Positions 11,155-59,300 of a stretch of DNA of 64,000 bases are shown piece by piece. Both the position numbers and the translations under genes were made by a program. Position 1 is the stretch's first letter. The number at the start of each line of letters is the position of its first letter. The stretch is from Hamiltosporidium tvaerminnensis FI-OER-3-3. Lineage: Eukaryota > Fungi > Microsporidia. The DNA is taken from positions 620,001 through 684,000 of the forward strand of contig CM061255.1 in the NCBI GenBank assembly GCA_022605425.2, read 5' to 3'. Below the pieces are notes generated by a model. That model was not told where the DNA came from. It searched no databases and worked only from the letters and a program-made list of their open reading frames with translations.

Positions 11155-11866
11155 AACGATGATGAAAATAAAGACTTTAAGAACTTTCTACTTGCCTTAT
11201 TGGGGTAAATTGACTGAAAATATTTTTTTAATTTTGGTAGGATTTAAACTAAACCACATTTATGGTTTTACAAGAAAATTTTTACAATAAAAAAATGAAT
11301 TTAGAATAGTAAAAAATTTCACAAGAAAAGTTTGTAGTTTGTTATATAACTAGATTGTAACCCACGGTTGAACTTGTTGGTAATTAATTTCATGCTAAAT
11401 TTGGAAAACTAAGTTTTTCGCTAGAGTAAGAAGACTTAGACTCTGAGAAATACAGAAGAACATATTCTAATAGAGTCATGAAAGTAAATAGCAGGTTATA
11501 CCTGTTACTATAACATATTAATCTCTGGTAGTATCATATAAATCACAATATATATCTTAGCTGCGAGTTTATTGGTTTCGAAGTGTGTGGAGTAGACTAA
11601 AATGCTGCTAGGTTTTTTTATGTCAAATATATTTTTCAACTTTCGATCAAACGCAAGAATATTTAACATTGAGGAAAGCTGGGCATATTCTCTGCCTTTT
11701 AAGTTGCCATTCAAACTTTTTGGATAAAATTATTTCGGATTTAGGTATAAAAAGAACAATGAAAGAATGTTTAAGAGAAATATCTGTCTATAATCAGGAA
11801 GTATGATCCGGTATCGTGAAATATAAATCGACTACTTTTTTTAAAAGGTTTGATTTTGAAATAAGG
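11155..11866 (+). mobile_element. ~730-nt repeat, highly diverged full-length copy
   Basis: Anchors in the expected order: aactttctacttg, tttgtagttt, agaagacttag, tagcaggttatacctgtt, atatatcttagct, aatgctgc, ttcgatca, gggca, aaggtttgat...aaataag. Confidence 0.75.
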
Positions 11867-12000: not shown

Positions 12001-12180
12001 GTGAAGAGAAGATAGCTCCGTTAAAAACTATTTGATTGTCAACGAGTACGTATATTTGGTGATCAAATCAATTTTGCAATTTTAGTGGGATATAAACCAC
12101 ACTTGTCTATAGATCGACCCTCTATAGTCTCGAGTTGGGCAGATTAAACGAAACACATAGAAAAATTTCATTTGTCATCT
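12001..12180 (+). mobile_element. ~730-nt repeat, degenerate 5' fragment
   Basis: gtgaagagaagatag...aaaaact...gagt...tggtgatca...gtgggatataaaccacact matches the element's first ~110 nt. Right boundary uncertain. Confidence 0.55.
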
Positions 12181-14219
12181 TGGGGACCAAAATATTAAAA
12201 AGTAATGGAATAAAATAGTAATTTGGATATATAGCTCGTTTGACAACATTTTAAAAGTTTAATTTGCAAGTAAATTTAATTTTAAATTTCGATTTTTTTT
12301 ATTTAAAAAGCTAATACGATAAGCTGCTATATCCCAAACATAATAATTAGCAAATGTTTTCAAACTTTAAACCTGGTAAATTTTATAGTCTAACTGCTGG
12401 AAGCTAAAAAAATAAATAAAAATCATCTGCTAATCTCAAAAAATAGATCAATAAAAATATATCAAGTTTTGAAATTTGACATCTACAAGTTATTCTAGTT
12501 TAAAATGTAGATAAACCCCTAATTTTCACCTTTTTTCAACACACTGTAATAAAATATGCTTTTGTGTATAATTTTGAAATTGAGTATTTTTAATACATAC
12601 AATATTTTTGTTTTAAGTTCAACTTCAATTTGTTTTTTTTGTGTAGTTTTTTAAAAATCTTTAAATATGGAATGTAAAATTATCTTAAGCGATTTTAAAT
12701 TTCCTGACGCATGTATAGTATGTTTTTGATGAAAAGTTGGCGCAAATAGTATTTTTTAGAAATATTTAATTTTAAATTGTAAATTTTGATTGATTTGTCA
12801 AAAGCACATAGAAGCATAACTTCCGCAACGTATACCAATGTAAAATAATGTAGTGCGTAAATAATTAAGGCTTAGTATTAAAATAAAAACTCAATCGAAA
12901 TTTCCTATAAATATTTAAAGATAAGAGTATGTAGTGTATTTATAAAAAAAACATATTGAGAGTAAACGTATTTCTTAATGATGATTTTGGAAAATAATAA
13001 TTTATGAAATATAAAAACGCACCTATCCTATTCCAAGATACTTCAAGAATTTTTATTTCCAAATTTTTAGTGCACTTTCACCTTCTTTTTTATAATTATT
13101 ACTTTATTTGTTAAAGTCACAAATTATGATATATCAATCCAACACTATATATTTCCAATAAATATCTTAAGCAAACGATCGATTTATTTTCTTTTGATAT
13201 TTCATACAGCATGTTAACTTTTATTTGAATATAAAAATTTTTAAAAGTATCTCGCTTATTTTAATCTTTGATTTACTTTTTTATTCGTTAAAAACCTCAG
13301 TCCAGTTTATTTAAAAACTGTATGTATATTGACTGCATATGTGGAAGTGTTATATAAGCATTATCAGTTGTATATCATCCTTCATATAATTGCAAAACTT
13401 AATGTTAATAATATTAAAGAATATAACCAAAACATTTTCCAGACTTTTTTATATATTTGCTGTTAATTTGTATCAAAATATTTAGTTAAGTGTTTTTTGC
13501 TAAAATTACCGCAAAAAATGTTTCTAAAAAAATATTTAAAAAGCTATTAAGTGATTGCCTATATAATTTATATATGCGTTATAGTGTATATATACTATAA
13601 TCTAATACCCGATCTCTAAGTTGCTTATATAAAATGCAATAAAGTATTCTGAAAATTTATATTAATATACTTTTTTACAATTTCTTAAAAAAGATTTCAA
13701 TTCTGGAAAAAAGTCAATCTTAAGGAATTACTTGATTCCTTAAATGTCGACTTTTATAAAATTATTATTTAAACATGCCTATCTAAATTTAAAATTATAT
13801 ATCAGAATAAAATCTTATTTTTATCATTATTAAATAACGATCCTAGGTTTCATAAAATGGAATTATTAGCCTGTAACTATTCGATAGCAGAATAAAAAAT
13901 TTCATTTTCGGAATTAATATAATCTTTATATTATTCTTTAGGATAACATATTTCTAAGAAATATAATCCCATCACGTAAGTATTTAATATATTTTTCATC
14001 CTGGAAATCTTTATTTTGTCTATTAAAATTAATGAAATATATAAAAACATTTAAGTATCAATTAAAAATCACCAAAAGTGTATTTTATAATCAATAAACA
14101 AAAAAAAATTCAAAATCTACCAATTATTTTGTTATTAAGATTAAATTCTCGTTTTTGATTGTCTAGTTAAATGCACTAAGATTCTATTTTTTATAATAAA
14201 AAAAATATATTGTTTCAAT

Positions 14220-17200
14220 TTATTTAATAAAATTCTGGGTTAACAAATTTTCTCTCGTTTAACTAATTTCTTCCATCACTTTAACCACTTTATTCTCTTT
14301 TTCTACATCCGACTTATCATTAATGTCTATCGTCGGTTCCTCTGGTCTGGTTACGTCATCTAAAATAAGGGGTAAAATATTTTTTGAATATACTTGTTTA
14401 ACACTATCTTCCTCGTTCTTCACTTCTTTTAAGGGGAGTGTTGGCTGTTTATGCATCTCAGCTCCTATAATAACACTTAATGACGCTCTCTCCCAGCTCT
14501 CTTCGGCACTTGGTCCTGACTCAATTCCTCTTCGTCGATCGAAGGAAATCATTTCGACTGTTTTCTTAAGTACTATGGACTGAATGTATGCCTCTACATT
14601 TATGGGTATTTGTAATCTTTTAAGATAAGTCTTATGGTATTTTGTCACAATACCGTCCCATGTTATCACATAAGGAATTATCTCTACACTACATTTGTAA
14701 ATAAAGCCCAGCTCATTTGCTAATAGGTCATACTTCCTAAGTTTCTCTGTTTCAACTATTTGAAGTGAGTCTTGGGAGGTGATTCCTACTTCAATGAGGG
14801 TAATCTTATTTCGTCTCTTGTCTAAAACGAATATATCTGGCCTATTATTTCGAATTTTGACATCAGTTTTTATTCTGGTGTCCACTCTTATCTCTGCATA
14901 CTCATTATCAAGAATTTCTTGAACTGAGTGGCTTCTGATTCGTTTTGAAGACTTGAATTTATATTTACTTAACAAGAGCAAATGTATACATCGTACCACT
15001 TCATTGTGTCGTCTAGTATAGTCATGACCAAGCATTTTTTCACATCTCGTTGCTAAATGGTCTACTGTTTTTCTAGACGTGTTGCAGTGTTGACACACAC
15101 CTTCTGCTCCCCAAAATACGTTTCTATCTTGGATATAGCAGAACACTGCTTCATCACGCGGTCTTACACTTCCTTTCTTTAACCATCTTGAGGAATCATT
15201 TACACTTACAAGCTCGTTGTTTCTAGCATTATTAACTTTGAATGTATTTTTCGTTTTTCTATTTCGTTATATAAGTTAGCTAGTTGAGCTTCATCTAATT
15301 TATTTTTAGATACCTCCTCTGCCATCCCGTATTTTACTTGTAAAAAGTCTTTTATTAGTGCAAGATGGGTTTTATTATCATTCTCCACCTTAAGGATTGC
15401 TGCTCTTCTGGTCGATGTTTCTTTAGATTTTTCCAGACAATCCAAGAGTTGCAGAAGCATATGTTCGCTTTTGAACTCAACACTATGAAGACCTCTCCTA
15501 AGTTCTGTTCTGGGAAGCTACAGACGCTCTTTACATCCTGGGCGAAGATGTATCTTGTTCTTTACTAAAACTGCACGTACTGCGTCATCCAACTTTGAGA
15601 AGTCGCCAGGTTCAAGTCGAAGTACACCTATATGATAGTTTATTAGAGATATCGCAGGTTGATTGATAGCTTGAAATAAATTTCTTGCATTCAATCTCGT
15701 GCGGCAAAGTCTCTCTACCCTCGCTATAAGTTTGGTTTGTACTTCCTCAAACGACTTACGTGTTGGAATTCCTCTGCTATCTTCTATTATTCCGAGGTAT
15801 TTGTAAACACCTATTCCTTCAAGAAGAGTAGCAGTATTCTCACAACACGAATCATTTGTGCCGACTTCTCTCTGTTTATTTCTAATCCTGTATTTTTCAT
15901 AAACATTTTTACCTCCTCCGTCATCTTTTCAAGCGTTGTTCCATCTTTGGCAAAGAGCTTAAGATCATCAATGAACAAGAGATGATTGGTAGAGTGGGAT
16001 GCATCCTCCGTTTGTATTGTCACCTTTGCGTATTCTTCATTGAGTTTACGGCTCAATGGATCCATACACAGCACAAACAATAAGGGTGACAAACTATCTC
16101 CCTGTAGAATCCCTTTATCAATCTTCTTGTTCATAATTTTTTCAGACCCTACCGAAATATCAATTTTCCATTTTGATATTGTTACCTAGATAAATTTCAG
16201 GATCCAATCAGGTAAATTAAGGTTTTCGATGACTTGTGTCAAATAAGCATGATCTATTGAATTATACGCTTTTTTGAACTCTATCCACGTTGCCTTAAGA
16301 TTGTTTCCATACTCTTTATTAATAGCAACATTTAGCAGGGCCTGATCCTTAGCTCCTTGCACACCTCTCACTGCACCCAATTGATTATCTGCTAGTAACC
16401 CTCGCCTTTCTACCTCAAGCTGAACAACTTTTGTAACACACTTTGTCGTCAGCTTGTAAAGGTTTGACATACAAGTTATTGGCCTATAGTCGGAGCCTTT
16501 TTGTGGTACGCTTTTTGGAATGAGATACGTTAGCCCATGATAAAACCAATTAGCTTGTGGTGTTCCTTCAAAACATATGGCTTTCACAATATCATAAAGA
16601 TACTTGTGAAGAGTCGTAAGTTTCTTGATATAAAAATTGTAGATCCCATTAATTCCGGCAGCTTTCCAGTTAGGAAGCCAATTGATAATATCTACAAATT
16701 CATTAAGTGAAGGAAACGTGACCTGGTGAGTATCCGGCACGAAAGGTATCAGATACTCATCATACGTAACTATTTCATTATTTTTGTTCCACATTGTGGA
16801 CCAAAAACTTACAATTTCGTCACGATTAACCACATGCTCGGATTCCACACGCTCGACAGGCCACGATAATATCTACCTCGGAACAACTCAAACATACGAT
16901 TCTCTTTTCGGAATTGCTTCCTACTTTCGTACATTGTAAGTTTTTTTTCGTAAACAGTTATCAGCTCATTCTTCTTAACTACAGCCTCCGATAGATCATT
17001 TGTTTTGTTTAGGTCTAAATTAAACACTCGCATAATTTTTTTAAGACTTTTAGTTTGAGAAGAGGAGAGTTCTTCCCGTCTACGTGCTTTCTCGAGGATA
17101 TCTTTTGAAAGTTTTAACACTGAAATTTTACTCTCAATGCTTTCTTTTTACGCTGATCTTGGCCTCTCTTTACGTGTTTCATCGTCATAACATACCTGTG

Positions 17201-18011
17201 CTGTCTGGATAATTCAGGCAACGTCTGTTATCGTCATAGGTACATGAGAGACAGCATATTCACCGACTATTCGATTAATAAGATCAAGAACTGTAGTGTC
17301 AACCGATTCATTTGGAAGCTTTCGAGTTCGGACTACTACTTTTCCGATTTCCTCCTCAGATATTTTTTTGATATTACTCAAGTATTTTTCTCTCAGGCTT
17401 ATAAATCGAGTAGCATCGGTCAAGGAACATGGCTCGGCGAGACAAGTGGCGATTCGACGTCGCTCTCCATTCTCTTCCTGCCTAATTTCCTCTTCCGTCT
17501 TATTGTGTGCCATTCTTTTTAGCACATCGATAGTTTCGGTACATGAGAACTTCTCATTATAGTAGCTCTGTATCTCTTTCCATCCATTTCTAGGCATTCG
17601 GTCAAACCTTGTTTGTACTGCAAAAAGAACACATCGAATAAATTCTTGACTCTCGGCCTCTATAGATCTGAGTATGGATCGGAGTACAACGAGCCTTTCG
17701 GAAATAGGTATGGTACAAAGGTTTGGCCAACTAGCAGCTATATCTGGCCTAGGGGTCACGGTGCTTGAATGCATAGGGTTAGATGGCGAGTGTATGGTGT
17801 TAAGCAAGCATACCTTTGTGTTTGTGTTTGCTTCGCTTGGTGGTATAGAAATGTTATTTATGATGGTGGATGGTGTGTATGAGCTTGGCTGTGGAATTCC
17901 CTGGTCGTTTTTACACTCTCTAATTACCCCATCCACTTCACTTGCCCTGTTTGCAGCCTTTATTATTTTTTCTTTTTGTTTTTCGCTGCCTACATATTTT
18001 CTTATACCCAT
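14220..18011 (-). mobile_element. Non-LTR retrotransposon (RLE type), copy 2, full-length, frameshifted
   Basis: ORF pieces give WKAAGING, YRPITC, QLGA, GILQGDSLSPLLF, LFIDDL, CQHC..HLATRC, RRHNEVV, RPDI..IEVG..KLRKY. Direct repeat tattgtttcaat at 14208-14219 and 18012-18023 (TSD). Confidence 0.96.
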
Positions 18012-18144: not shown

Positions 18145-18875
18145 CTTTATTTAAAAGTATCAAACCTTCTTTAAAATAGTGGCAAGTGTTATATTTGTTT
18201 TCATGACATTAACGCAGTTCTAGGTTTAACATAAATAACTGCTACCCCAAAACTCCATCAGTAACCCCTGCGATACCTACGTCTCAAAGCTTTTTATTTA
18301 CTAGGTGAGTAGAACCTAATTTCTACGCGAGGAATTTGCCCGGGTTCCGTTATGTTCCGTTGCATGGAGTGTGATCGAAGGCCGAAGCCCCCCCTTGGGC
18401 TCCCCTAAGACCATGCAGCATTCTTACTTACTCTACACTTTCTGAACCCAATAAACTTCTAGCTAAGATATATTTCAGAGATTTGCATGGGGTCCACCTA
18501 GATAGTGCAATGTCATACCAACAGGTATAACCTGCTACTTAGCTTTCCTGGATTAAATGGTTTTTTGTTTTGTATCTCCCAGGCGCTAAGTCTTCTAACC
18601 CGAGTGAGCAAGGCTAGGTTTCCATGCTTTTACATGGCAATTACCTACATGTTCAGCTGCGCTATGCAATCTGGTTACGTAAAAAAACTACAAATAAATT
18701 TATAAAAAAGGTTTCTTCATTTCGTAGAATTCTTCTCTTCATAATAACTCCCATGGAACAACCGAAGATGTAGTGTGGTTGTATTCCCACCAAAAATCCA
18801 AACAATGATCTTCACGCCAGATTCACACACTCATTGCCAAGCAGAAAGTTTTTTATGTGGTTATCCTCCCTCCAC
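18145..18875 (-). mobile_element. ~730-nt structured non-coding repeat, well-preserved copy
   Basis: Reverse complement closely matches 35999-36729 end to end. Confidence 0.95.
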
Positions 18876-30470: not shown

Positions 30471-31180
30471 GGTGAAAGAACGATAACCATATTGGAAACA
30501 ATCTGCTTGGTAAAGATTAGGTAAAATTGTGTATAAATAATTGAGCTGATTTATATTTTAATAAATATCGACTTCTATTTCGGTTATTCTATAGGGATTT
30601 GTATAGAGAGGAGAAAAATTCTACAAAATAATGAAAGCTACTTTCAAATTTATGTTGAAGTTTCTTGTGTAACTAGAGTATAAAATACGATCGAATTTGT
30701 AGGTAATTACCATGTAAAAGCATAGAAACCTAGCCCTGTAATTAAGGTTTGAATACTTGGCGCCTAAAAAACCGAAAAACATAGTTTTAAAAAGCAAGTA
30801 ACAGGTATACCTCTGATATTACATTGTTAAATATTGTTTGCCTCTATGTGAGTAGACGATATCTATACCTTAGATAGCCGTTTATTCTATTTGAAAAGCG
30901 TATGGGAAGTAAAGAAATGTTTCATTTCTTTAAGATCAAGGTGATTTCAACTTGTAATCATACACAGGGCAATAGTGTTGATGCAGTCTGGCGAGTCTGC
31001 ATCGTTTAAACTGCTTCTACGTCTTCTTTGGTGGAATATCTTTGAAATTTGGGTATCTAAGACCCAACTATGGTAAATCGGATAGAAGTTATCTATGTTA
31101 AACCTAGAACTGTGTTAATGTTACAAAAACAAGATATCATGGGTTATTTTTAAAAAAATATTTAAAACTTATTCATAAGA
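30471..31180 (+). mobile_element. ~730-nt repeat, diverged copy
   Basis: gataaccat, tctgcttggtaa, gtaggtaattaccatgtaaaagcatagaaacctagcc, caggtatacct, tatgttaaacctagaactgtgttaatgt. Confidence 0.85.
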
Positions 31181-31868: not shown

Positions 31869-34800
31869 TTATATTTAATAAAATTCTGGGTTAAAATATT
31901 TTTACCATTTTTATATGTTTTCTTCTACCTCTTTAACCACTTTTGTCTCTTCTTCCAAATCCGACTCTTTATTTATGTTATTGGTCGGTTCCTCTAAAGT
32001 GGTTCCTCCTTGTGAAATAAAGGGTGCTTTATTTTTTGGTTTAAAATATTTTGCACCATCTTCCTCTCTCTTCTCTTCTTTTAAAGAAGGTGTTGGTTAC
32101 TCATGCATCTCTGCTCTCATAATAACACTTATTGACGCTCTCTCCCAACTCTCTTCGGCATTTAGTCCTGACTCAAGTCCTCTTCGTCGATCAAAGGAAA
32201 TTGTTTCGACTGTTTTCTTAAGTACTATAGACTGAATGTATGCCTCTACATTCATGGGTATTTCTAGTCTTTTAAGATGAGATTTATGGTATTTTGTCAC
32301 AATACCGTCCCAGGTCATCACATAAGGGATTATCTCAACACTACACTTATAAATAAGACCCAACTCATTGGCTAGCAGGTCATACTTCCTAAGTTTTTCA
32401 GTTTCAACTATTTGAAGTGAATCTTGGGAAGTGATTCCTGCTTCAATGTGTGTTATCTTATTCTTCTTCTTATCTAAAATATATATGTCGGGTCTGTTAT
32501 TCCGAATTTTAACATCAGTTTTTATTCTGGTGTCCACTCTTATCTCTGTATACTCGTTATGAAGAATTTCTTGAACTGAGTAGCTTCTAATTCGTTTCGA
32601 AGACTTAAACTTTTATTTATTTAGCACGAGTAAATGTATACATCGTACCACTTCATTGTGTCGTCTAGTATAGTCATGACCAAGCATTTTTTCATATCTC
32701 GTTTCTAAGTGATCTACTGTTTTCCTAGACTGATTGCAGTGTTGGCATATACTTTCTGCACCCCAGTAATACATTTATATCCTGGATATAGCAGAACACT
32801 GTTTCATTGCGTGGGTTAATATTACCTTTCTTTAGCCATCTTGAAGAGTCACTAACACTCACAAGCTCATTTTTTCTTGCATTATATAACTTTGAATGGA
32901 GTTTTCGTTTTTCTATTTCGTTATATAGTTTTGCAAGTTGAGCTTCTTCTAAACTTTTCTTAGTGACTTCTTCTACCAACCTGTACTTTAGTTTTAAGAA
33001 GCCTTTTATTAGTGCAAGATGGGTTTTATTATTATTCTCCACCTTGAGGATTGCTGCTCGTCTAGTTGATATTTCTTTACTTTTTTCCAGACAATCCAAG
33101 AGTTGCAGAAGCATATGTTCGCTTCGCAACTCAACACTATGTAGGCCTCTTCCAAGTTCTGTTCTAGAAAGGTATAAACGCTCTTTACATCTTGGGCGAA
33201 GATGTATCTTATTCTTCACCAACACCGCACGCACTGCATCATCTAATTAGAGAAGTCAGCCGGTTCAAGTCGAAGTACTCCTATGTGATAGTTGATTAAC
33301 GATATCGCATGTTGATTGATTGCAGAAAATAAATTTTTTGCGTTTAATCTAGTGTGACAAAGTCTTTCAACTCTTAATAGAAGTTTGCTCTGTACTTCTT
33401 CAAATGAGCTACGTGTTGGGATTCCTCTGCTATCTTCTATTATTCCTAAATATTTGTAAACACTAACACCTTCTAGAAGAGTAGCAGTATCTTCACAACA
33501 CGTATCATTTGTGGCTGACTTCTCTTTGTTAATCTATAAGCGAATCACCTCTAAGAATTCCTTTGCCTCGCCTGTCATAGAACTCAATGTGGAGCTGTCT
33601 TTTGCAAGGAGCTTAAGATCATCAATAAACAAGAGATGATTAGTAGAGTGGGATTCTGCATCTGTTTGTACTGTCACTTTTGTGTATTTTTCATTAAGCT
33701 TTCGGCTTAATGGATCCATACACAACACAAATAACAAAGGTGACAGACTATCTCCTTGTAGAATCCCTCTATCAATCTTCTTGCTCATGATTTTTTCAGG
33801 CCCTATTGATATATCAATTTTCCATTTTGATATAATTACCTTCATAAATTTCAGGATCCAATCAGGTAAATAAAGGTTTTCAATGCATTGAGTTAAATAA
33901 GCATGATCTATTGAATCATAAGCTTTTTTAACATCAATCCATGTTGCCTTAAGATTATTTCCATACTCTTTATTTAAGGCAATGTTCAGTAGAGCCTGCT
34001 CTTTCGCTCCCTGCACACCTCTTACCGCCCCTAATTGGTTCTCTGCAAGCAACCCTCGCCTTTCCACTTCAAGTTGAACGACTTTCGTTACACACTTAGT
34101 CGTTAACTTGTAAAGGTTGGACATACAGGTGATTGGCCTGTAGTCAGAGCCTCTTTGTGGAATTCCTTTGGGTATCAAATAGGTAAGCCCGCAGTAAAAC
34201 CAATCAGCTTGAGGTGTTTCTTCTAAACATATAACTTTCACAATATCATAAATATATTTGTGAAGAGTTGTAAGTTTCTTAATGAAAAAATTGTAAATAC
34301 CATCAATTCCAGCAGCTTTCCAATTGGGAAGCCAATTAATGATATTTACAAATTCATCAAGTGAAGGAAACGTGGTCGGATGATTATCTGATACAAATGG
34401 AATCAAATAATCATCATACGTGACTGTGTCATCATTTTTGTTCCACATTGTAGACCAAAAACTCACAATTTCATCACGGCTAACCACATGCTCGGATTCC
34501 ACACGCTCAGATAACCCACGATAAAATCGACCTCGGAAAAGCTCAAACATACGATTCTCTTTTCGGAATTGCTTCCTACTTTTATGCATCGTAATTTTTT
34601 TTCTCATAAACGTTCAAAGACTCATTCTTCTTAACTAAAGCCACAGAAAGATCAGTTACACTGCTCAAGTTTAAATTAAACTCTCGCATGATTTTCTTAA
34701 GGCTCTTCGTTTCCGAAGTGGAGAGCTTTTCCTGCTTACGAGCCTTCTCGAGAAGATCTTTGCAAAGTACTAACTTAGAAATTTTACTTTCTATTTTTCC

Positions 34801-35671
34801 TTCCAAGCGGATCTAGGCTTCTCTTTACGTGTTGCCTCGTCATAGCATACCTGGGCTGCCTGGATTATCCGTGCCACTGCAGTTATCGTCATCAGCACAC
34901 AAGAATCAGCATAGTCACCAATAATTCGATTAATAAGGTCCAAAACTTTACTGTCAACCAATTCACTTGGAAGCTTTCGAGTTCGGACCACACTTTTCCG
35001 ATTTCCTTCTCCGAGATTTCTTTGATTTTACCAAAAATTTTATCTCTCGGGTTTATGTACTCCGTGGTGTCAGTCAAGGTACATGGCTCGGTGAGACAAG
35101 TGGCGATTCTACGTCGCTCTCCATTCTCTTCTTGCCTTATTTCCCTTTCTGCCTCATTTTGTGCGAGTTTTTTAAACGCATCGATATCTAGTGTGCAGAT
35201 AAATTTCTCATTATAGTACCTCAGAGTAGCGGGCCAGCCATTTCTGGGCATTCTCTCAAACCTCTTTTGCACTGCTAGAATAGCAGATCTAGGCCATTCC
35301 TGCTCTACGACTGTGACAGAGTCAAGTATTGAGTGCAGTACCATCAGTCGATTCCCTTCTAGAATGGCATCTGTATTGAGGTTTTTCATGCCGTTGACTG
35401 GTCCACAAGCAGTGGCATCGGTACCAGAAGACGAGGGTATGGTGTCAACTAAGCAGACTAGACTAGTCTGGCAACTACTGCTTGGTGGTTGGTGGGTGGT
35501 GTTATGGAAATTCGGTGGAGGTGGAAGTCTCTCGGATAACATTGCTACATCTACATCTACATCACACATCAAAATCTCTCCTGCGCTGTTCTCCAAGTTG
35601 TTTACAGCCTTTATTTTTTCATTTCTTATATTTTCGATGTCTACTTTTTTCCTTCTACCCATTATGTATTT
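31869..35671 (-). mobile_element. Non-LTR retrotransposon (RLE type), copy 3, full-length, frameshifted
   Basis: RT (WKAAGIDGI, YRPITC, DVKKAYDSI, GILQGDSLSPLLF, LFIDDL), GRGL, RPDI, KLRKY. 15-bp TSD gtggcttatataaga at 31854-31868 and 35672-35686. ATG at 35662. Confidence 0.97.
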
Positions 35672-35998
35672 GTGGCTTATATAAGAAAGAATAAAATTTA
35701 CAATTTAAAAAAAGTAAAAAAATAAGTTTTGTATAACTCTATAGAATTAGAAAAATAATAATCAACTATTAGATTAAAGTAAATTAACTGTGTATGTTTC
35801 TAGCGATTGGTACTTCAACACAAACCATATTTGTTTTCAAATAAATATTTATGTTCAAAAAGTTTAAAAAAATTTCGGGAATTATATACAAGATTAAAAA
35901 ACTTAGAATGTTTCGATTGTATAATATATATTCATTCTTAAAATTGAAATTTTTGTTATATGTAAATTAATCTCAAATATAATATTTGTTATTATAAA

Positions 35999-36729
35999 GA
36001 TGGAGGGAGGATAACCACATAAAAAACTTTCTGCTTGGCAATGAGTGTGTGAAACTGGTGTGAAGATCATTGTTTGGATTTTTGGTGGGAATAAAACCAC
36101 ACTACATCTTTGGTTGTTCTTTGGGAGTTGTTATGAGGAGGAGAGGTCTAAGAAATGGAGAAACTTTTTCTACGAATTTATTTGTAGTTTTTTATGTAAC
36201 CAGATTGCAGACCGCGGCTGAACATGTAGGTAATTGCCATGTAAAAGCATGGAAACCTAGCCTTGCTCACTCGGGTTAGAAGACTTAGCGCCTGGGAGAT
36301 ATAAAACAAAAACCATTAAAAGCCGGGAGAGCTAAGTAGCAGGTTATACCTGTTGGTATGACATTGCACTGTCTAGGTGGACCTCATGTAAATCTCTAAA
36401 ATATATCTTAGCTAGAAGTTTATTGGGTTCAGAAAGTGTAGAGTAAGTGGGAATGCTGCATAGTCTTGGGGGAGCCCAGGGGGGGCTTCGGCCTTCGATC
36501 ACACTCCATGCAACGGACATTAACGAACTCCGGGCAACTGCCTCGCCTAGCAATTAGGTTCTACACACCTGGTAGATGAAAGGCTTTGGGACGTAGGTAT
36601 CGCAGGGGTTACTGATGGAGTTTTGGGGTAGCAGTTATTTATGTTAAACCTAGAACTGCGTTAATGTCATGAAAACAAATATAACACTTGCCACTGTTTT
36701 AAAAAAAGATGTGATACTTTTAAATAAAG
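35999..36729 (+). mobile_element. ~730-nt structured non-coding repeat (SINE-like), reference copy with TSD
   Basis: Flanked by tgttattataaa at 35987-35998 and 36730-36741. Begins GATGGAGGGAGG, ends AATAAAG. Many pairable segments including a C(UUCG)G hairpin at 36481-36496. Confidence 0.95.
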
Positions 36730-39699
36730 TGTTATTATAAAAATATAAACTAAGAGTAAATTTCTCTGAAATATAAAATGTTTTGATAACATTCAAATTT
36801 ATCATGATTGAAAATACATAGAATACACGAGAATATACATTTTAGGCTTAAGACTAGTTTTACAAAGCTAAGATGATTTAACTTGAAATAACAGCATTTG
36901 TACTATTTTAGATAATCAATGCATATACTTGAGAAGAAAATATTAGAAATGTTGTAAGAAACCACTACTATTTTTTTTAATAAAATATTCCTTGTTAAAA
37001 TAAAATGATTATATAATTAGATTTAAATTTTAGTTATAATTTATATACTATTATTAGGATTTCAAGCTAATTGAATTACTACTGCCGTATCGTTCATTTT
37101 GAATTATATTTTATGAATTTCAAAAATATGATTAGACATTATTTGAAGCATCAAAGAGGTCAGTTTATAAACACATAGCAAATATAAATAGTTCTATGAA
37201 TGAATAAATCTTATAGGTCGAGAGCGCTTCGGGTAATGAATGAAAAAACAGATACGGCAGAAAATAAGTAAGACAGCAGAATTAAAAAGAAATCACCTTT
37301 TCTATTTCATTATACATGAAATTTAGAAGATTATGATGCTTTCGAATATCTAAGAATGCTAATGCCTGGTATGAGAAATTTTTTTGAAGAAGAATTCCGG
37401 AGAAACACGATAGAAGCAAAATAAGCTATTTGTTGCACGTACAATTGAATTCAATTGAAACATAGCTGTTTTAATAATGCTAAATTCACCGAGTTTAAAG
37501 CCGAATTGCTGATGTTTTGGCTTTTAAATACCCTGTTTGGATAAAAACCAGGGGTATAAGAGTTGAGTGAATCAAATTCGCATATAATATAATTCTCTTA
37601 GGAAAAATAAATATAAAATTTATATTTGTTGAAATTCTGCTTTAGAATTATTTTGAAATATTTTAGCTCTAGCAATCTCTTTTTGGTAAAAAATTATAAT
37701 TGAAAATCCAGCTATTATGGCCTTTATTCTTCCTAAAAAAGAGAATTTTGTATTTAGAACCAAAAAAACCGATTCAATATAAAAATTTATGAAATTTCTC
37801 AAGATAATACAAATTTAAGAAGAGCATTGGATGATTTGTAAAAATCTACGGTAAAAAAAATAAAAAAAATATTTTTAGCAGAAATTTAACAAAAATAGAT
37901 TTCATTATAGATAGTTCGATATATTTTAGCATCTAATTTTTATATCTGATATTTTTTTTAGATCATTGGAGTAAGTATAAGTACTGTAGTAGTTTCGGAG
38001 GAAAGTTACACGTTTTTAAGACATAAATACAGAAAAAAAAAATTTAAAAGGACAAAATATTCATTTTTTAAGTTAGTTTCTATCTGAGTGATGTTCATAA
38101 ACCCCATGAATATTTACCTAAGAATTTGCTAGTAAATAATAAATACGTATTTTCATTCGATATGTTGTATCCACAACAAATTTATACCTTAAAAAACAAT
38201 CGTACTTGAAACTCGATTAAATACACTAAAGACTTAGAAAAAATATGTGTATAGATTATTGAAATAAAAGAAGCAAAACGCGTATATTTCAAATATTTGT
38301 ACAGCTATTTAAGATTAGTCTTTCGAACACAAATACTATTACACAGAAAATTTATACTTTAAAATTATTTACAGAATCGTTAACACTTTAAAAAATAGCT
38401 TTTAAGCACAAATTAGTAAATCTAGAATGTTAAATATAAATTGGAAAAACCTGATAATGTATATGATTATATAGTCATAAATATAAAGACTAAAAAAATC
38501 AGGACAGTAAAAATTTCAAAAATCTATTTAATATGTTATCATATTTTAAAAAATTAGTTTGTTTGTAATGGTTTTATCAATAAAAAAAATGATTTCTGGC
38601 AGAGTATGTCTAGAATATAATCTTAATATAAGTTTAAAATACCTTTTTTTATTTTTTCTATATATCACGTTCATATATTTTAGCTGTTTTTAGAACCTAG
38701 TTACTGGTCATATTCTCTTCGTATATCCTGCCATAAAATTTAATATGTAAGCATATATCTTTTGTAAGGTATATGTAGCCTCATAGAAGTCTCATAAAGT
38801 ATTTTATAACATCTCATTATTGGTAATTCAAAAATTAATCTTTTGGATACTTATATCTTACTATAAGTCTATAAGTATTTTCAAAGTTGTGAAATTCGTT
38901 TATTTTTTGGTTCTACTGCACGAAAAAAATCTTCAAAAATGCTTCTACATCGAATGCGTGCTTTTTTTATTAAATTTACTATTTAAATTGAATATACCAA
39001 GTCAATATTATGAATTCATAGTCGTTTTAATTCAGATGACTACTATATCTTTGCTGCTACTTAAAAGAAATTTTTGGATATATGACTCCAGATTCGTCAT
39101 GACCATTAATATATATTTAAAAAAACTAGCTTTAGATGAGAAAATTCACATTTTTTTGTCTGATATAGAATTTTTAAGGAGTTATAACTGTAAGTCCAAA
39201 CTAATCCTATAAATAGCAGAAAAGTTGAAACTGACAATTTTTTTTTTCTGCTTCCTTATAGATATAAATATTGAATAAAGAAAAAAACATTTATTAAATT
39301 CAAGAATACTCATTACATAACCTTTTTAGATATGTAAACAACACTGTTTAGCTTTTTTTGTGCCTTATCTAATCCTAAAGGTCGATTTAGTGCTGCAATT
39401 TTGTTATTTGTGTTTACTAGGGGAGTTTTTTTACAAAGTTTTACAAAAATCAAATCTTTTTTATGTTTAAAACTTCGGCTACGTCAGTCGCATTTTTCTG
39501 TTAATTTTGACGATTCAAAGGTCGCAAAGAGCAAATGTTTACTTCAAAACAAAACAAGTAAATATATTTCCAAGGGCTTTTTTAGGTAGGAAAAGGCTCA
39601 ATAGTTATGCTGTTATAGTCGACGACAAAAAAATGCCATACAGTAGTAAATTTTAGAAAAATATTTAAAAAATCAAAAATAGTAACAAAAAATTTTTTA

Positions 39700-41664
39700 T
39701 TAACTATAACATCCTTCCTCGCTTGCTTTATTTTCTATCTTTAAGACTTCGGCTACTTTTAAATAATATTCATATCTTTTCTTACTTTTATCATCATTGG
39801 AACCTGTACATTCTAAGGCACCATTTATGGCTTTGGTTGTAGCACCAAACTGGTTATCAGAAACACCGGGCGCATTTCTTACATTTTGTACCCAAAACCA
39901 GACGGATGTTTGAGCACCAATTTTAACATCTTCAGCAACCATTTCGGGTTTCATCACAAGCTCTTCGCCCATTCCAATACCTTCAGAAGCCGCCTTATAA
40001 TTTGCTGCCCATGAAAGTTGCATGAAACCTCTCCCATGGTATGATTTATCAGGTTGTCCCGTCCCATCATCGTATTGTGAAGCACATGATGTTCCCCCCT
40101 GACAAGCTTCTTCTTCAGTTTTTGTTAAACCGACTGATTCATGTATTATTTGTGCAACGAACATTGCGCCTTCATCTCGTTTGAAGGATTCTTTTTTCAT
40201 TGCTTCAGCTACTGCATCACAATTTTCTTGTGGTGGAGAAAATCCACATGCAGAAGCGCTTTCCATTATTTCCTGAGCCGAGATATCACCGCCAGATGAA
40301 GAAGATCCACCGGATGATCCTCCAGAGGAACCCTCATCTTGTTTTGACAATAATTTCTGAGATTTTTCGTAACTTTCATTCCTTAAAAAATAATTCTTTA
40401 AATCGGAATTTATATTTTTAGAGACCGATTCCCCAAGATTTGATTTGTTTTTTGCATGGATTTCATGATCGTTAAAATTATTTTCATTGAACTTTACATT
40501 CCCGTTTTTGTTGCTAGAATCGAATAAATTAGAATTGTTTTTTTCTGAATTATTTTTTGTTGCATTTGCTTCGATTTCTTTTTTCATAAATTCCGTATCA
40601 AAAATAACATTCGATTTGTTCACAATATTGTGATCTTTCTTCATATTAATATCATTAGACAAATTTTCGAAATTTATATTTCTGAAATTTGTTTCTTTAA
40701 CTTCTTTGTCATTGGATTCTATAAAATTGCTGGTTGCTGGAGAACTAATCATAGTAGGCAAGTTCATAGGAATGAGAGGTTTAATGCATTGAAGAGAAAC
40801 GGTACCGGGTATTACTTCACCGTTGCTCGTTTGTGCCGAGGAAATGCTTTGTGGACTTGGTGAATTCGATGTAGAAGACATCGACTGACTTGATATATTA
40901 GAAGAAGAAACATTACTTGATGAACCAGTTGGTATCCCACTAGTCTTAGTTATATTTATCGGAATAGGAATTATTTGATTGTTTTTTTGTATATTTTTTT
41001 TTGCAGTAACGATTTCGACTTTGATTTCAGACGGGGCCATTTTATTTGTAACTGTAACAGTTGTTGTTATTTCCTTGGTCTGTGTTTTGGCGTCTTTACT
41101 GGTTTTTTCTGTAAAATTTTCAGTTTGTGGTTTATTTTGAGAATTAATAATTGTTCGAATGAATGTTTCCGTTATTGTTCTAAGATTAATGTTCTCTTTT
41201 TCTGGCTTCATTATTAAAGTACTGAAAATTGTGGTAATGGATGGAATGACTTCTCTTTTATCCAAAAAACATCCATCACATTTACTCATAGTAACCTTTT
41301 CATCTTTATTTAATACATCCTTGTTCAAATTACCAATTCCATTTTTTGCATTATCGAAATATCTACCTTTTTCAATGGCTTCCATATCTTTGTTTTCGTT
41401 ATCAAGTACGTCGAAAATCTTTTCAATATCATTATGTTCAGTTTCTTGGTTAATTTTTCTTTCAATATTCCTTTCCTTTACACAGGTTAATCCACCATTT
41501 CTTAATTCGCATCTTGTATTTTCTGGACAATCTACAATAATCCAATTACCTTCTACATCACATACGTGCATTGAATTATCTTTACATTCCGAAGAACCCG
41601 GCAAGCAAATATCTCTTTGAATACTTATTCCTAAATATCCCAAAAGAATACCGAAAAACATCAT
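39700..41664 (-). CDS. Secreted GH19 chitinase with N-terminal Cys-rich (chitin-binding-like) domain
   Basis: Signal peptide, 6-Cys module, T/S/N-rich linker, GH19 motifs AQIIHES, YHGRGFMQLSWAANY, WFW, FGATTKAINGALEC. Confidence 0.92.
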   Translation of the reverse strand: MMFFGILLGYLGISIQRDICLPGSSECKDNSMHVCDVEGNWIIVDCPENTRCELRNGGLTCVKERNIERKINQETEHNDIEKIFDVLDNENKDMEAIEKGRYFDNAKNGIGNLNKDVLNKDEKVTMSKCDGCFLDKREVIPSITTIFSTLIMKPEKENINLRTITETFIRTIINSQNKPQTENFTEKTSKDAKTQTKEITTTVTVTNKMAPSEIKVEIVTAKKNIQKNNQIIPIPINITKTSGIPTGSSSNVSSSNISSQSMSSTSNSPSPQSISSAQTSNGEVIPGTVSLQCIKPLIPMNLPTMISSPATSNFIESNDKEVKETNFRNINFENLSNDINMKKDHNIVNKSNVIFDTEFMKKEIEANATKNNSEKNNSNLFDSSNKNGNVKFNENNFNDHEIHAKNKSNLGESVSKNINSDLKNYFLRNESYEKSQKLLSKQDEGSSGGSSGGSSSSGGDISAQEIMESASACGFSPPQENCDAVAEAMKKESFKRDEGAMFVAQIIHESVGLTKTEEEACQGGTSCASQYDDGTGQPDKSYHGRGFMQLSWAANYKAASEGIGMGEELVMKPEMVAEDVKIGAQTSVWFWVQNVRNAPGVSDNQFGATTKAINGALECTGSNDDKSKKRYEYYLKVAEVLKIENKASEEGCYS

Positions 41665-43725: not shown

Positions 43726-45942
43726 CTAGTAACATCCTTCCTCACTCGCTTTATTTTCTATCTTTAAGACTTCGGCTACTTTTAAATAATATTCATATCT
43801 TTTCTTACTTTTATCGACATTGGAACCTGTACATTCTAAAGCACCATTTATTGCTTTGGTTGTAGCACCAAACTGGTTATCAGAAACACCGGGTGCTGGT
43901 CTAACTCTTTCAATCCAATACCATACAGAAACCTGGGCAGCAATTTTAGGATCTTCTGATACTAAGTGAGGATTATGAAGTAATTCATCGCCCATTCCAA
44001 TACCTTCAGAAGCTGCCTTATAATTTGCAGGCCATGAAAGTTGAATGAAACCTCTTCCATGGTATGATTTTCCTGCTCCACCAGTGCCATCATCGTATTG
44101 TGAAGCACATGATGTTCCCCCCTGACAAGCTTCTTCTTCGGTTTTTGAAAGACCAGAACTTTCATGAATTAATTGTGCGATAAACATGGCGCCTTCCTCT
44201 TTACTTTCAAATTTTCCTTTCATTGCTTCTGCCACTGCATCACAATTTTCTTGTGGCGGTGAAAATCCACATGCAGAACAACATTCCATTATTTCTTGAG
44301 CTGAGATATCCCCACCAGATGATGATGAAGAAGAACCACCAGATGATTTTCCAGAAGAAGAGCCACTTGAATTTGGGCTGCTCGATGACCCACCTGGCTT
44401 TGTACTACTACTGGATTCTGAACTACTTCCACCTGCACCACCAGGTGGCGTTCCACCCGCTGCACTTCCTCCGGTGCTTTTACTTCCACTGCTCCCACCG
44501 CTACTCCCACTACTGCTTCCGCTGCTACTCCCACTACTGATTCCGCTGCTACTCCCACTACTGATTCCGCTGCTACTACCACCGCTACTACCGCCACTAC
44601 TCTTACCTGAAGTTGCTCCTGCACTTCCTCCACTTGGACTTCCGTTACTTCCTCCACTTGGACTTCCGCTACTTCCTCCGCTTTTACTTCCGCTACCTCC
44701 TCCGCTGCTTCCTCCACTTGGACTTCCTCCGCTGCTGCCACCACTTTTACCTCCGCTACCTCCACCTGTACTTCCTCCACCAGCACTTCCTCCACTAGCA
44801 CCTCCTCCACTAGCACCTCCTCCACCACCTTTACTTCCGCTCCCTCCTCCTCCGTTGCTTCCTCCACTTGGACTGCCTCCACTAGCACCCCCTCCACCAC
44901 CTTTACTTCCGCTCCCTCCTCCACCAGCAGCTCCACTTCCTGCACCCTCCTGTTTGCTCCCATTTCCACCAGAACCTCCAATTCCGCCTCCCGCAGCCCC
45001 AGAACCTCCACTTCCTCCTCCACCACCTCCACCACCTCCACCTACTGGTTGCTGTAAATTATTTCCTACATTTATTGGACCAGGCATTGTGATTGTTGGC
45101 TGAATAAATGGACATACTACACCGCCAACACCACAACCCTTATTTTTATTATCCTGTTTCTCATGCTGTACAGAAGCAGTTGTATTTCCTTTTTCTCTTA
45201 TAATTTCAAATTTTATATTTGATGGTATCAAACGAGAAGTAACCGTGACTGTTTTTTCCCTCACTTGATCAATATTCTTGCCATTTGCATTGTTATTAGC
45301 TTTATCCTCTGTTTTATTGTCTTTACAATTATTATCCTTGCAGTCTTTGATCTCTTTTATCGAATTAGCTCCAATATTATCTTTACAATTATTATCCTTA
45401 CAGTCTTGAATAGCCTTGGTCGTAATATTATTCGGATTTTCATTCTTAGTATCCTTACAATTATTATCTTTACATTCTTTAGTCTGCATAATTGTCTTAG
45501 TCTCCAGAATAGCCTTATTGTCAGCATTACTATCCTTACAATTACCATTGCACTTACCATTACCTTCATTCATTCTATTCGTTTTTATTGCCCCACTGTC
45601 AACTGTTCGTGTCACAGTAGTTGTAACAACTTTGTCTTCTTTACTTCTATTTCGATCTTTAAAATTTTTAAATTTAAATTTTTTATTTTCTTTTTTGTCC
45701 CTTCCCTTATCATCCGAATACTCTTCTTCACTATAAGTATCTTCTTCTTCTATATCTTCCTTCTTTACGCATTTCGGTGTGGTTTCTTCTATTTCACACA
45801 CACTACCCTCTGGACAGTCGACAGATATCCAGTTACCATTAATATCACATACGTGCATAGAATTATCCTTACATTCTGATGAGCCTGGTAAACACTTGTC
45901 ACGTTGATATGTCGTCAGTAGCAGTAATAGGAACGTAAGCAT
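43726..45942 (-). CDS. Secreted GH19 chitinase paralog with Gly/Ser-rich linker
   Basis: Same architecture; AQLIHES, YHGRGFIQLSWPANY, WYW; CKDNNCKD repeats; ~245-aa G/S linker. Confidence 0.93.
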   Translation of the reverse strand: MLTFLLLLLTTYQRDKCLPGSSECKDNSMHVCDINGNWISVDCPEGSVCEIEETTPKCVKKEDIEEEDTYSEEEYSDDKGRDKKENKKFKFKNFKDRNRSKEDKVVTTTVTRTVDSGAIKTNRMNEGNGKCNGNCKDSNADNKAILETKTIMQTKECKDNNCKDTKNENPNNITTKAIQDCKDNNCKDNIGANSIKEIKDCKDNNCKDNKTEDKANNNANGKNIDQVREKTVTVTSRLIPSNIKFEIIREKGNTTASVQHEKQDNKNKGCGVGGVVCPFIQPTITMPGPINVGNNLQQPVGGGGGGGGGGSGGSGAAGGGIGGSGGNGSKQEGAGSGAAGGGGSGSKGGGGGASGGSPSGGSNGGGGSGSKGGGGGASGGGASGGSAGGGSTGGGSGGKSGGSSGGSPSGGSSGGGSGSKSGGSSGSPSGGSNGSPSGGSAGATSGKSSGGSSGGSSSGISSGSSSGISSGSSSGSSSGSSGGSSGSKSTGGSAAGGTPPGGAGGSSSESSSSTKPGGSSSSPNSSGSSSGKSSGGSSSSSSGGDISAQEIMECCSACGFSPPQENCDAVAEAMKGKFESKEEGAMFIAQLIHESSGLSKTEEEACQGGTSCASQYDDGTGGAGKSYHGRGFIQLSWPANYKAASEGIGMGDELLHNPHLVSEDPKIAAQVSVWYWIERVRPAPGVSDNQFGATTKAINGALECTGSNVDKSKKRYEYYLKVAEVLKIENKASEEGCY

Positions 45943-55990: not shown

Positions 55991-56104
55991 AAAATTTTAT
56001 TAAATAAATTACTATCACACTTTTATATTTTAATATTTTTTTATCTTACCATTATATCTTTATATTTAATTTAAAAATTAAAATTAATATCCCAACAAAC
56101 TTTA

Positions 56105-56317
56105 ATAAACCCCTAACCCTTACTAACCTTACTAACAACATACTACATACTACATATTAACACCCCCCCTCACTTAACAACATACTACATACAGTACTAA
56201 CAACATACTACATAACAACATATTAACCCTTACTAACAACATACTACATATTAACACCCCCCTCACTTAACAACATATTAACACAACCTACATATTAACA
56301 CCCCCTACTAATACCCC
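56105..56317. repeat. C/A-rich tandem repeat beyond the P5 ATPase stop
   Basis: ctaacaacatactacatattaacaccccc(ctcactt) units. Confidence 0.8.
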
Positions 56318-59300
56318 TCACTTAATACACCTCCCCCTTTTCATACCAAAAACCTTAAAAAAAAACTTTTCCCCCAAAACGCATAAAAACAAATCCAAAC
56401 AAACAACAAAAAATATAAAATTTCGAAAAGAATCCTCAATCCTTACAACCTCCATATACCGACTAAAATCCTCATTTACTCTAAACAACAACATAACAAA
56501 CACACAACTCACACCAACCAAACAATTTCTTAAATGAAAATTTTCACTTAAACTTTCTCTAAAAGGTCTACCAATATAATTTACTATAAACGTTGATATC
56601 TGTTGATAAACAGATATAAGAAATAAAGAAGTATTCATCAAACTCGGTACAAACTTTTCATTATATACAACCTTCTCATACTTCTCTGATTCCCACATCA
56701 CAACTAAAAAAGATAAAATATGCACTAAAACTTGAAATATTACACTTCCCATCACATAAAAATTAAAAATGTTACAAACAGGTCTCTCAACACTTATTTC
56801 CTCTAAACTCTTACTTCTTGTTAAAAACATAAAAGCAAAAGCAATTAACACCCCACTTATCACCATCTGTACATCTCCAAATCTAACACCCATAGAATCT
56901 AAAAAACTTAACCCAAAAGCTGTTATTAAAGAATTTAAAGCTAAAATTTTATACATTTGAATTGTAGTTACTAAAGTAGATCTTCCTTGTTTTATAACAT
57001 CTACAACACTACCTATAGAATTAGTCTTAGCAGTAAAATGAGCAGCACAACTAGCATCACCTAATCTAACCTTTCTCTCATCCCCCTGGACAAAGGGGTT
57101 AGTGATAGTATTAGGGTTGTTGTTAGGGTTGTTGTTAGTATTAGAGTTGTTGTTAGGGTTGTTGTTAGTATTAGTATAAGTAGGGTTATTACTAACACCA
57201 CCCTTACTACCATCCCTATTACTAACACCACCCTCCCTATTACTAACACCATCCTTATAAACACCATCCTTACCACCACCCACACCCTTACTACCATCCC
57301 TACCACTAACACTACTATAACACTCCACTAGTGCTACTCCTATGTCTGCACACTTCAATGCCCCTACATCATTAGTACCATCACCACACATAAGAGTAAC
57401 ACACCCTTCTTTCTTATACCTCTCAATAATACCCTCTTTATGTTTAGGATCTGCTCTACTAAAAACACTAAAACTTAAAAAATTATTATTTTTTAAAACT
57501 TCTTCAATTTCTTCTCCATCACACACATTACCATTATAAAACCCTAATTTACGTGCTACACAACATGCTGTCATCTTATTATCTCCTGTAATCATAACTA
57601 CTTTCATACCACCTTTTATTAGATTTTCAACTGCTCTCTCACTTCCTTCTTTTATTTTACTTTCAAATAACACAAAACCACAGAAATTTAAATCTGACTC
57701 TAAATAAGACCTATCATTTAAAGGGTTATAATTAGAGAGGGTGATATTATTATTGTTGTTGTTATTGTTGTTAGTGATAAGGGTGTTACTACTCTTATCC
57801 CTACTACTACTCTTACTACTACTATCCCTACTACTACTACTCTTATCCCTACTACTAATATCCCTACTACTACTCTTATTACTCTTATTACTATCCCTAC
57901 CACCACACACCCTACCACTACCCCCACTACCACTACCACATATATCCTTATACGCTATACTTATAATTCTATACCCTAACCTTGCATACTCCTCATACAC
58001 ACTATCATACCACACAGGTACTTCTTTCAAATAACACTTAACTACCTCTGGTGCTCCTTTCATACCAACATATACATTACCTTCTTCATTCTCTCCTATA
58101 ACAGTCATTCTTCTTAATTCACTACAAAAATCATATTTCTTAATAATTTTATATAATATATTATTATAAATAACACCCTTTTTACTTAAATACATATTAA
58201 AATAAGAAATTATTGTTGTTTCTAAAGGATCACCTATTAAAGTACCTTCTAAGTCAACAACACTATGACACGTAGCAAGGACCTTAGCAATATTTGTATT
58301 TATTGGTGAGGGTGTGTTAGGGGTAGTAATAAGGGTTGTATTTAGGGTTGTATTTAGGGTAGTGTTTAGGGTAGTGTTTAGGGTAGTGTTTAGGGTAGTG
58401 TTATTATCCTTTATATCCCTATTACTACTATCCCTATTACTACTATCCTTATTATCTAACATATCCCTACCACCATCCCTACTAATATCCCTACTAATAT
58501 CCCTACCACCATCCCCACTACTAATATCCCCACTACCACCATCCCCACCCCCCACTACTATACCACACATCCTTAGTCCTGTCTCGGTAAGTGTTCCTGT
58601 CTTATCAAAACATATAACATCTACTTTACCTGCTGTTGGTATACGATATGCTTCTAAACAAAATATACCTTTTAATATTAAAGATTGTATAGAATTATTA
58701 ATAGCAATACTAAGTTCTAAAGGTAATTCAGGTGGTACAACATTAGTAAGAATAATAATTGTTTCTAAAAATAATTTATAATTATTTTTAATATTAAAAC
58801 TATTATAAATATTATAAATACTAGAAATTATAGCAAAGAAAAGAAGAAAAAGAATAAAGAAAAACGGTTCTTTTTCATGTCTTATTTCTGTATTTGTCAT
58901 TTTCTTTATCAGTTTACCTTGTTGTGTACTGAAAGAGGTTCTTAAGACATATAAGGTAAGAGAAGTACATTTTATTATTTTAGTACCACTGAAAAGGACG
59001 AATTTTTTATGATTTATAAGGCAGAAGGAATCATATATATTGGTATTAGTAGTATGGTTGTTGGTATTAGGGTTAGTATTGGTATTAGTATTAGTATTGG
59101 TACTGGTATTAGTATTAGTATTAGTATTAGTATGGTTATTGGTACTGGTATTAGTATCACTAGCGTTAGTATCACTAGCGTTAGTATCTATATTACTTAT
59201 GTCTAAGTCACTAGTATTATCTATATCACTATCACTAATGCTTAGCTTTGTTGATGGTGTTGATTCTCCTGTTAACATACTCTCATCTACTACACATGTA

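Follow-up and report, generated by a model that had tools for sequence, protein, structure and literature searches.

The window analysed here is a 64,000-nt stretch of DNA (contig C10:620001-684000) from the microsporidian Hamiltosporidium tvaerminnensis, part of a genome of 21,638,905 bases in 17 contigs. The published assembly of this species comprises 21.64 Mb in 17 contigs, with interspersed repeats put at 39.56% and an "other" class at 25.45% (PMC10542269). The window is AT-rich, with a GC content of 28.5%, and its gene content is eukaryotic: a U2 snRNA, a MYST acetyltransferase, an RFC subunit and GH19 chitinase-like genes. The chitinase domain lies at the C-terminus of two paralogous ORFs of 654 and 738 aa, at 39700-41664 (-) and 43726-45942 (-), the second of which carries internal tandem-like repeats at about 44457-45046, in the most GC-rich and most strongly skewed part of the window. 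A P-type ATPase ORF of 1,409 aa occupies 56318-60547 (-), and the bin at 56001-58000 has an extreme GC skew of -0.61. The U2 spliceosomal RNA gene, at 10175-10376 (+), matches RF00004 over the full model length with 72.4 bits and is the sole match to Rfam at gathering threshold in the whole window. Copies of the element described below lie about 1.5 kb upstream and about 0.8 kb downstream of it, and we saw no insertion into the U2 gene itself; Utopia, a LINE clade with a restriction-like endonuclease (RLE), targets U2 genes (PMC4640811).

Interspersed with these genes are three copies of a LINE, all on the minus strand (2121-5527, 14217-18011 and 31872-35662), and eight copies of a much shorter repeat, of which the one at 35999-36729 (+) is our query. 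A reading made from the sequence alone had listed eight copies of this element, and searches with nhmmer and BLAST using 35999-36729 found all eight to be real, on both strands, at identities to the 731-nt query from 97% down to 57%. The query itself is recovered by nhmmer as 35999-36728 (+). A young copy, 96.7% identical, is cut by the window edge (63458-64000, +; BLAST and nhmmer). A full-length copy at 18145-18874 (-; 18146-18874 by nhmmer) is 92% identical; it has the orientation of a LINE whose start codon it precedes by 134 nt. The full-length copy at 7904-8625 (+; 7904-8622 by nhmmer) belongs to a diverged lineage, with 75% identity to the query by BLAST, and has a 99%-identical relative at G000:C10:551343-552064, so that this lineage was itself recently copied. 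Three further copies, found by nhmmer, are old: a decayed one at 11170-11747 (+) and a full-length one at 30475-31168 (+), both about 61% identical, and one at 61622-62346 (-; 61638-62276 by nhmmer) of about 57% identity, whose lineage includes two relatives at 94%. The eighth, at 12003-12121 (+), is a 5' fragment covering element positions 4-123 (nhmmer, E 2e-5).

The query copy begins (A/G)TGGAGGGAGG and ends AAATAAAG, as the sequence-only reading had described. Its conserved 5' head, at 36000-36021, has the family form GTGGAGGGAGGATAACCACATA, with A as first base in this copy. Three thymine runs on the sense strand, which would act as Pol III terminators, lie between 36079 and 36193: a T5 at 36079-36083, a T5 at 36165-36169 and a T6 at 36188-36193 (element positions 81, 167 and 190). 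The alignment shows the T6 run kept in nearly all diverged copies, and T4 runs follow at element positions 623, 699 and 720. Near the other end, a conserved 3' box, ATGTTAAACCTAGAACTGCGTTAATGTC, spans 36641-36670 and is retained even in copies of 57-61% overall identity; within it lies GTTAA(A)CCYAGAA, a motif that resembles the LINE. An AATAAA hexamer of polyadenylation-signal type, at 36723-36728, sits right at the 3' end. In H. tvaerminnensis, A[A/U]UAAA averages 20 nt upstream of mRNA 3' ends (PMC10542269). The element has no coding capacity: its first ATG meets a stop at codon 5, as had been claimed, the plus strand holds no ATG-started ORF of at least 25 aa, and the longest ORFs with alternative starts reach 58-69 aa.

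The exact limits of the element are set by its absence elsewhere. We compared contigs from three public DNA runs over 35300-37800: X1, whose organism label is that of the best-matching runs; X12, with that label too but from another isolate and study; and X17, from a related organism with a different label. In X1 the site is filled, with one contig spanning the left junction and another the right, at zero differences from the window. In X12, a 3,375-nt contig covers 35638-35987 and then continues unbroken through 36731-37800, and in X17 a 3,205-nt contig has the identical 35987-to-36731 joint. These empty-site contigs skip 743 nt, which equals the 731-nt element plus one copy of a target-site duplication (TSD), and retain a single TSD copy; the joint thus places the element boundaries at 35999 and 36729. 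The family similarity stops just upstream of 36001 in all three runs. The TSD, TGTTATTATAAA, had been proposed as a 12-bp repeat at this copy: it is found on both sides, at 35987-35998 and 36730-36741, and comparison of the flanks shows it to be the only direct repeat of the region. The flanks of X12 and X17 have variants in common relative to the window, and the insertion is therefore confined to the reference lineage. We take the 35999-36729 copy as a recent insertion, exact loss in two lineages being less parsimonious, and the search for filled and empty sites that had been suggested has found both. The left flank at 35638-35987 differs from X12 and X17 at 24 of 350 positions and the right flank at 8 of 1,070; the left-flank variants, common to the two runs, mark an unusually diverged haplotype block beside the 5' end of a LINE.

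Genome-wide, the 731-nt element is one copy of an abundant non-coding mobile family that numbers many hundreds of copies. Allowing at most two mismatches, the 22-nt 5' head matches 530 places in the genome and the first 22 nt of the 3' box match 742, each with zero matches to the reversed pattern, which bears out the suggestion of a possibly very high copy number. A first-look DNA search returned 1,448 candidates, of which the best 40 are all full length at 96-98% identity. The summed word depth of the element relative to its flanks, 2,500-3,400x in X1 and X12, is not a copy number and agrees with very many copies. Mean pairwise identity among 32 young copies is 97.4%, the family as a whole spans 98% down to 57% identity, and length is nearly constant, at 680-732 nt even in the oldest copies. 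The GC content of copies drops with age, from 42% to 26%, and that of the element is well above the genome background. A few copies in our sample of loci are 5'-truncated; these truncated copies, and the larger count of 3' boxes than of 5' heads, are what reverse transcription beginning at the 3' end would leave behind.

Some copies lie close to one another. Some contigs of X1 and X12 over 36001-36730 leave one element at its 3' end and, after a spacer of 5-31 nt, enter the 5' start of another, so that head-to-tail neighbours must exist elsewhere in the genome. At G000:C15:321064-322565, two copies in opposite orientations lie 52 nt apart, and at one sampled locus (L023) a full-length copy is directly preceded by a second copy of the first ~22 nt of the head, so that the 5' end is partly duplicated at the junction.

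The junctions of the family tell how it inserts. Scoring TSDs across the 32 copies with recognisable ends, we found that 25 reach a score of at least 9, against 11 of 306 mismatched-flank controls in which the upstream flank of one copy was paired with the downstream flank of another. Independent TSDs number 23; their median length is 14 nt (range 11-23), and they tend to begin with T and finish with A. The ...AAATAAAG end is separated from the 3' TSD by 0-9 extra bases (0-1 in most copies), and 0-2 extra bases precede GTGGAGGG on the 5' side. A poly(A) remnant was seen in only one of about 50 copies, L016, where 10 flank-like nucleotides and then A15 stand ahead of the TSD. Junction features of this kind are the anatomy of target-primed reverse transcription, as established for non-LTR elements. 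The TSD statistics, the exact empty site and the copy counts together support the earlier proposal that this is a long non-autonomous retroelement, devoid of coding capacity, with a route of insertion like this one.

The same junctions bear on two other classes of mobile DNA. An LTR origin, be it as a solo LTR or as some other end of an LTR retrotransposon, would be compatible with the size of the element and with a family form that begins (G)TG, but the element ends in ...AAATAAAG instead of ...CA, its TSDs vary from 11 to 23 nt where an LTR element would have a fixed 4-6 nt, and the empty site sets the boundaries with a 12-nt TSD. Across about 347 kb of sampled genome no copies are paired around gag-pol, and the Ty3-like element at L043 is unrelated, save for a partial element copy at the edge of that locus. 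The copies are neither paired LTRs nor the fixed UTR of a longer element, and most young ones have TSDs; we regard this explanation as extremely improbable. A non-autonomous DNA transposon, MITE-like or Helitron-like, would likewise be non-coding, abundant and at home in AT-rich intergenic DNA, and we give it an equally slight chance: the element lacks terminal inverted repeats, as had been noted, the TSDs are long and of variable length, the 3' junction carries variable extra bases and in one case a poly(A) stretch, some copies are 5'-truncated, and recognisable 3' boxes outnumber 5' heads. Both classes are excluded by junction features that hold across the family.

The element had also been called structured, and this description did not hold up. 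Relative to dinucleotide shuffles, the minimum free energy (MFE) of the whole element has a z-score of -1.22 on the plus strand and 0.10 on the minus strand. The RNAalifold consensus of 18 copies contains 14 pairs at -1.15 kcal/mol, which is near random, and a column-shuffle test in 120-nt windows over six moderately diverged copies gave sense-strand z-scores from -1.6 to +1.5, none significant. Long-range inverted repeats are mostly pairings of A-runs with T-runs, with unconvincing compensation. Two 100-nt windows of a young copy are locally stable, at element positions 271-370 (z -3.6) and 571-670 (z -2.6), the second of which folds the 3' box into a hairpin. On the alignment, the local helices have 79% paired cells and 19 double-change pairs, against 13.2 +/- 2.7 after shuffling (10 of 500 shuffles reach 19), in a test where the sequences are related and the structure was taken from one of them; support for covariation of the two hairpins is weak. 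Old copies retain 50% of GC positions against 74% of A/T positions, and this neutral decay limits the power of all such tests, which still reveal no exceptional fold.

These results also weigh on the idea that one master gene, encoding a cellular structured ncRNA with a host function, gave rise to the copies as processed pseudogenes. The length and several blocks of the element are conserved across deep divergence, its GC content exceeds the background and the two local hairpins have MFE z-scores below -2, all of which such a gene could explain. Against it, several diverged lineages have each been copied recently (the 99% pair of the 7904 lineage and the 94% relatives of the 61622 lineage), the element has no Rfam match even at E <=10, and the comparative fold statistics are near random. 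We consider this origin very unlikely, if somewhat less so than an LTR or a DNA transposon.

As to how the element is transcribed, no tRNA-, 5S-, 7SL- or rRNA-type head was recognised by ARAGORN or by Rfam at E <=10 over the element, where matches were at chance level only; the sequence-only reading had recognised none either. The best matches to A and B boxes carry two mismatches and fall at unrelated places. With such A- and B-box matches and with the internal T5, T5 and T6 runs, full-length transcription by Pol III is unlikely, and we rejected a canonical Pol III SINE as a candidate on the grounds of the missing tRNA, 7SL or 5S head, the mismatched boxes and the internal terminators. The label "SINE-like" therefore stands in its loose sense, whereas the stricter one fails for want of a Pol III-type head and with three T runs inside the first 200 nt. 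The terminal AAUAAA and G, together with the L016 copy and its transduced flank plus A15, favour Pol II as the putative polymerase of the element, with a transcript that would be cleaved in the flank, a few bases beyond the element end.

A non-autonomous element needs enzymes from elsewhere, and a young LINE family with long ORFs resides in the same genome. Sequence comparison shows that the copy at 31872-35662, next to the query, is degenerate but recognisable by its RVT_1 domain; it starts at the ATG, ends ...ATTTTATTAAATA and is flanked by a 14-nt TSD, CTTATATAAGCCAC. The copy at 14217-18011 belongs to a different subfamily, and for the third the coordinates 2121-5527 give the aligned part only. 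Across the genome, RVT_1 had 466 first-look candidates, and of the 150 scored ones, some 50 fall within open frames of at least 1,190 aa. Fourteen LINE loci fall into three subfamilies that are 83-85% identical to one another and 97.6-99.5% identical within. The LINE is about 3.8 kb long, and its one ORF encodes about 1,250 aa. Similarity between copies starts at the ATG, in the context ATGG, or within 76 nt of it, and stops about 40-45 nt past the stop codon at ...TT(T/G)TTAACCCAGAATTTTATTAAATAA, so that copies end in AUUAAAUAA, without a poly(A) tail. The TSDs, scored by eye, are about 9-15 nt long and the flanks are diverse and AT-rich. The main LINE (14217-18011, 31872-35662 and L031-L039) is essentially devoid of a 5' UTR, its similarity and its TSDs beginning at the ATG (ATGGGTAGAA...) or a few bases before, and its first ~100 codons are far more variable across subfamilies than the remainder.

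The reverse transcriptase of the LINE occupies residues 504-743 and matches the structures of L1 ORF2p and R2 with E-values from 1e-18 to 1e-13. Towards the C-terminus follow a CX2CX8HX4C motif and then RPD...IEV, and the N-terminal 500 aa have no match to an APE domain. The RPD region has sub-threshold matches to two Pfam PD-(D/E)XK families (E 0.05-0.1). A phmmer search of the nuclease region against the PDB returned no nuclease match and did not reach the R2 nuclease domain, its look-alikes in the ESM Atlas were only generic C-terminal pieces of the "reverse transcriptase family", and a single-sequence AlphaFold model of it has a pLDDT of 31. The LINE looks R2-like, with a candidate restriction-like nuclease by motif.

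Element and LINE resemble each other in several respects. Both end in A[A/U]UAAA plus 1-3 nt without a tail, both start RTGG, both are young, and they share their TSD range and the motif GTTAA(A)CCYAGAA. Beyond this, BLAST of the element against the three LINE copies finds only words of 11-16 nt and no extended LINE-derived segment. The stretch at 36390-36424 (+) aligns locally with the 3' UTR of LINE subfamily A at a score of 26 that is suggestive only, as 5 of 500 dinucleotide shuffles score as high (about 0.01, uncorrected) and the site is internal, outside the 3' box; for subfamilies B and C the same comparison is not significant, with about 250 of 500 shuffles as high. From these likenesses, we infer that the single-ORF LINE of about 1,250 aa probably supplies the enzymes to the element.

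The element might instead be a non-autonomous retroelement moved by another reverse transcriptase, either that of an APE-type LINE (ORFs of 914-1,068 aa, L040-L042) or that of an LTR element. The genome does hold several further RT lineages, the similarity of the element to the favoured LINE is merely suggestive and the one A15-tailed copy is more typical of poly(A)-primed, APE-type mobilisation. On the other hand, BLAST of the element against L040-L042 yields only words of 17-24 nt, these families look far rarer than the ~1,250-aa LINE among the scored RT matches, and it is the favoured LINE with which the element agrees in end type, RTGG start, TSD range and young age. We judge another enzyme source unlikely, although it is the most probable of the alternatives considered here. 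L040 itself (G000:C4:3200-13100) is a different LINE, with a 914-aa ORF, a weak APE match alongside the RT and an A-run past its 3' UTR, and LINEs of this type lie within a few kilobases of contig ends (C4:7827, C9:2559, C9:6055 and C1:1029), as a telomere-associated family would.

Our main reading, to which we assign a probability of about 0.8, is that these ~730-nt repeats are non-autonomous non-LTR retroelements, inserted through target-primed reverse transcription in trans by the single-ORF LINE and probably transcribed by Pol II. In this model, a source copy would be transcribed from its own first base, the G of GTGGAGGG, most likely by Pol II, and the terminal AAUAAA would set the 3' end of the RNA a few bases into the flank. 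The RNA would then be captured in trans by the LINE protein, with its RT, its C-terminal CCHC motif and its PD-type motif of a putative restriction-like nuclease; the 3' box at 36641-36670, retained in the oldest copies, is a candidate for the part of the RNA that is recognised. The protein would nick AT-rich DNA and reverse-transcribe the RNA at the nick, usually exactly from the ...AAAUAAAG end, and a cut of the second strand 11-23 nt away would give rise to the TSD.

A bolder and much more tentative proposal is that this is the first SINE-like family described in Microsporidia and amounts to a cassette of a Pol II-type promoter and a poly(A) signal, which together with the LINE that lacks a 5' UTR might now account for several percent of the genome. 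Intergenic regions are very short, and every new copy would bring into one of them both a start site for transcription and a signal for polyadenylation; the pair could possibly be a major driver of expression change and genome expansion in large-genome microsporidia. We consider this less likely than not.

Published overviews of transposons in microsporidia report LINEs, LTR elements and DNA transposons and no SINEs (PMC4202319, PMC7313128), and our text searches of the literature, with Dfam and Repbase outside this comparison, turned up no account of an element like this one, be it from Hamiltosporidium or from another microsporidian. The family is new, and its kind, the non-autonomous non-LTR retroelement, is already known; for the phylum Microsporidia the element is apparently new. 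Large-genome microsporidia serve as a model of parasite genome expansion, and part of their unclassified repeats, as reported for this assembly, would be accounted for once one abundant family is named, its ends exactly set and its likely LINE partner given. Its filled and empty sites offer presence/absence markers for population studies of the Daphnia-Hamiltosporidium system. If transcripts are confirmed, the element would also lend itself as a natural reporter of transcription start and end sites in an organism for which genetic tools are lacking.

Several known systems can be set beside this one. Like the Pol III SINEs Alu and B2, the element is non-autonomous, non-coding, flanked by TSDs, present in high copy and, on our reading, dependent on a LINE, but its 731 nt lie at or above the usual size limit of SINEs. 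RIME with ingi, NARTc with L1Tc and SIDER in trypanosomatids, and Eg-R1 in powdery mildew, are non-autonomous partners of LINEs that are several hundred nucleotides long and either Pol II-type or promoter-less. RIME is built of the two ends of its LINE, whereas no extended LINE-derived segment is detectable in the element described here. The LINE of this genome in turn resembles R2-like elements in its single ORF, central RT, C-terminal CCHC and PD-type motif and want of an APE domain, but differs from them in that it is not target-specific.

The closest described analogue, compared by anatomy and description, is the set of EhSINE1/2/3 and EhLINE1/2/3 in Entamoeba histolytica. An EhSINE is reportedly called an abundant polyadenylated transcript in a cited reference. 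The host phylum differs, being Microsporidia in our case, and the 3' similarity of LINE and element, which here comes down to a short motif, is statistically not firm. The EhLINE is 4.8 kb long, compared with about 3.8 kb, a single ORF and no 5' UTR for the LINE in this genome. EhSINEs are non-coding elements of 0.5-0.7 kb that inhabit the AT-rich genome of a parasite; they have TSDs and are polymorphic for insertion, with one TSD copy left at the empty site. The LINE on which they rely carries a restriction-enzyme-like endonuclease, and SINE and LINE together take up a sizeable part of that genome (PMC3716655). The element described here has likewise TSDs, filled/empty polymorphism and an empty site with a single TSD copy.
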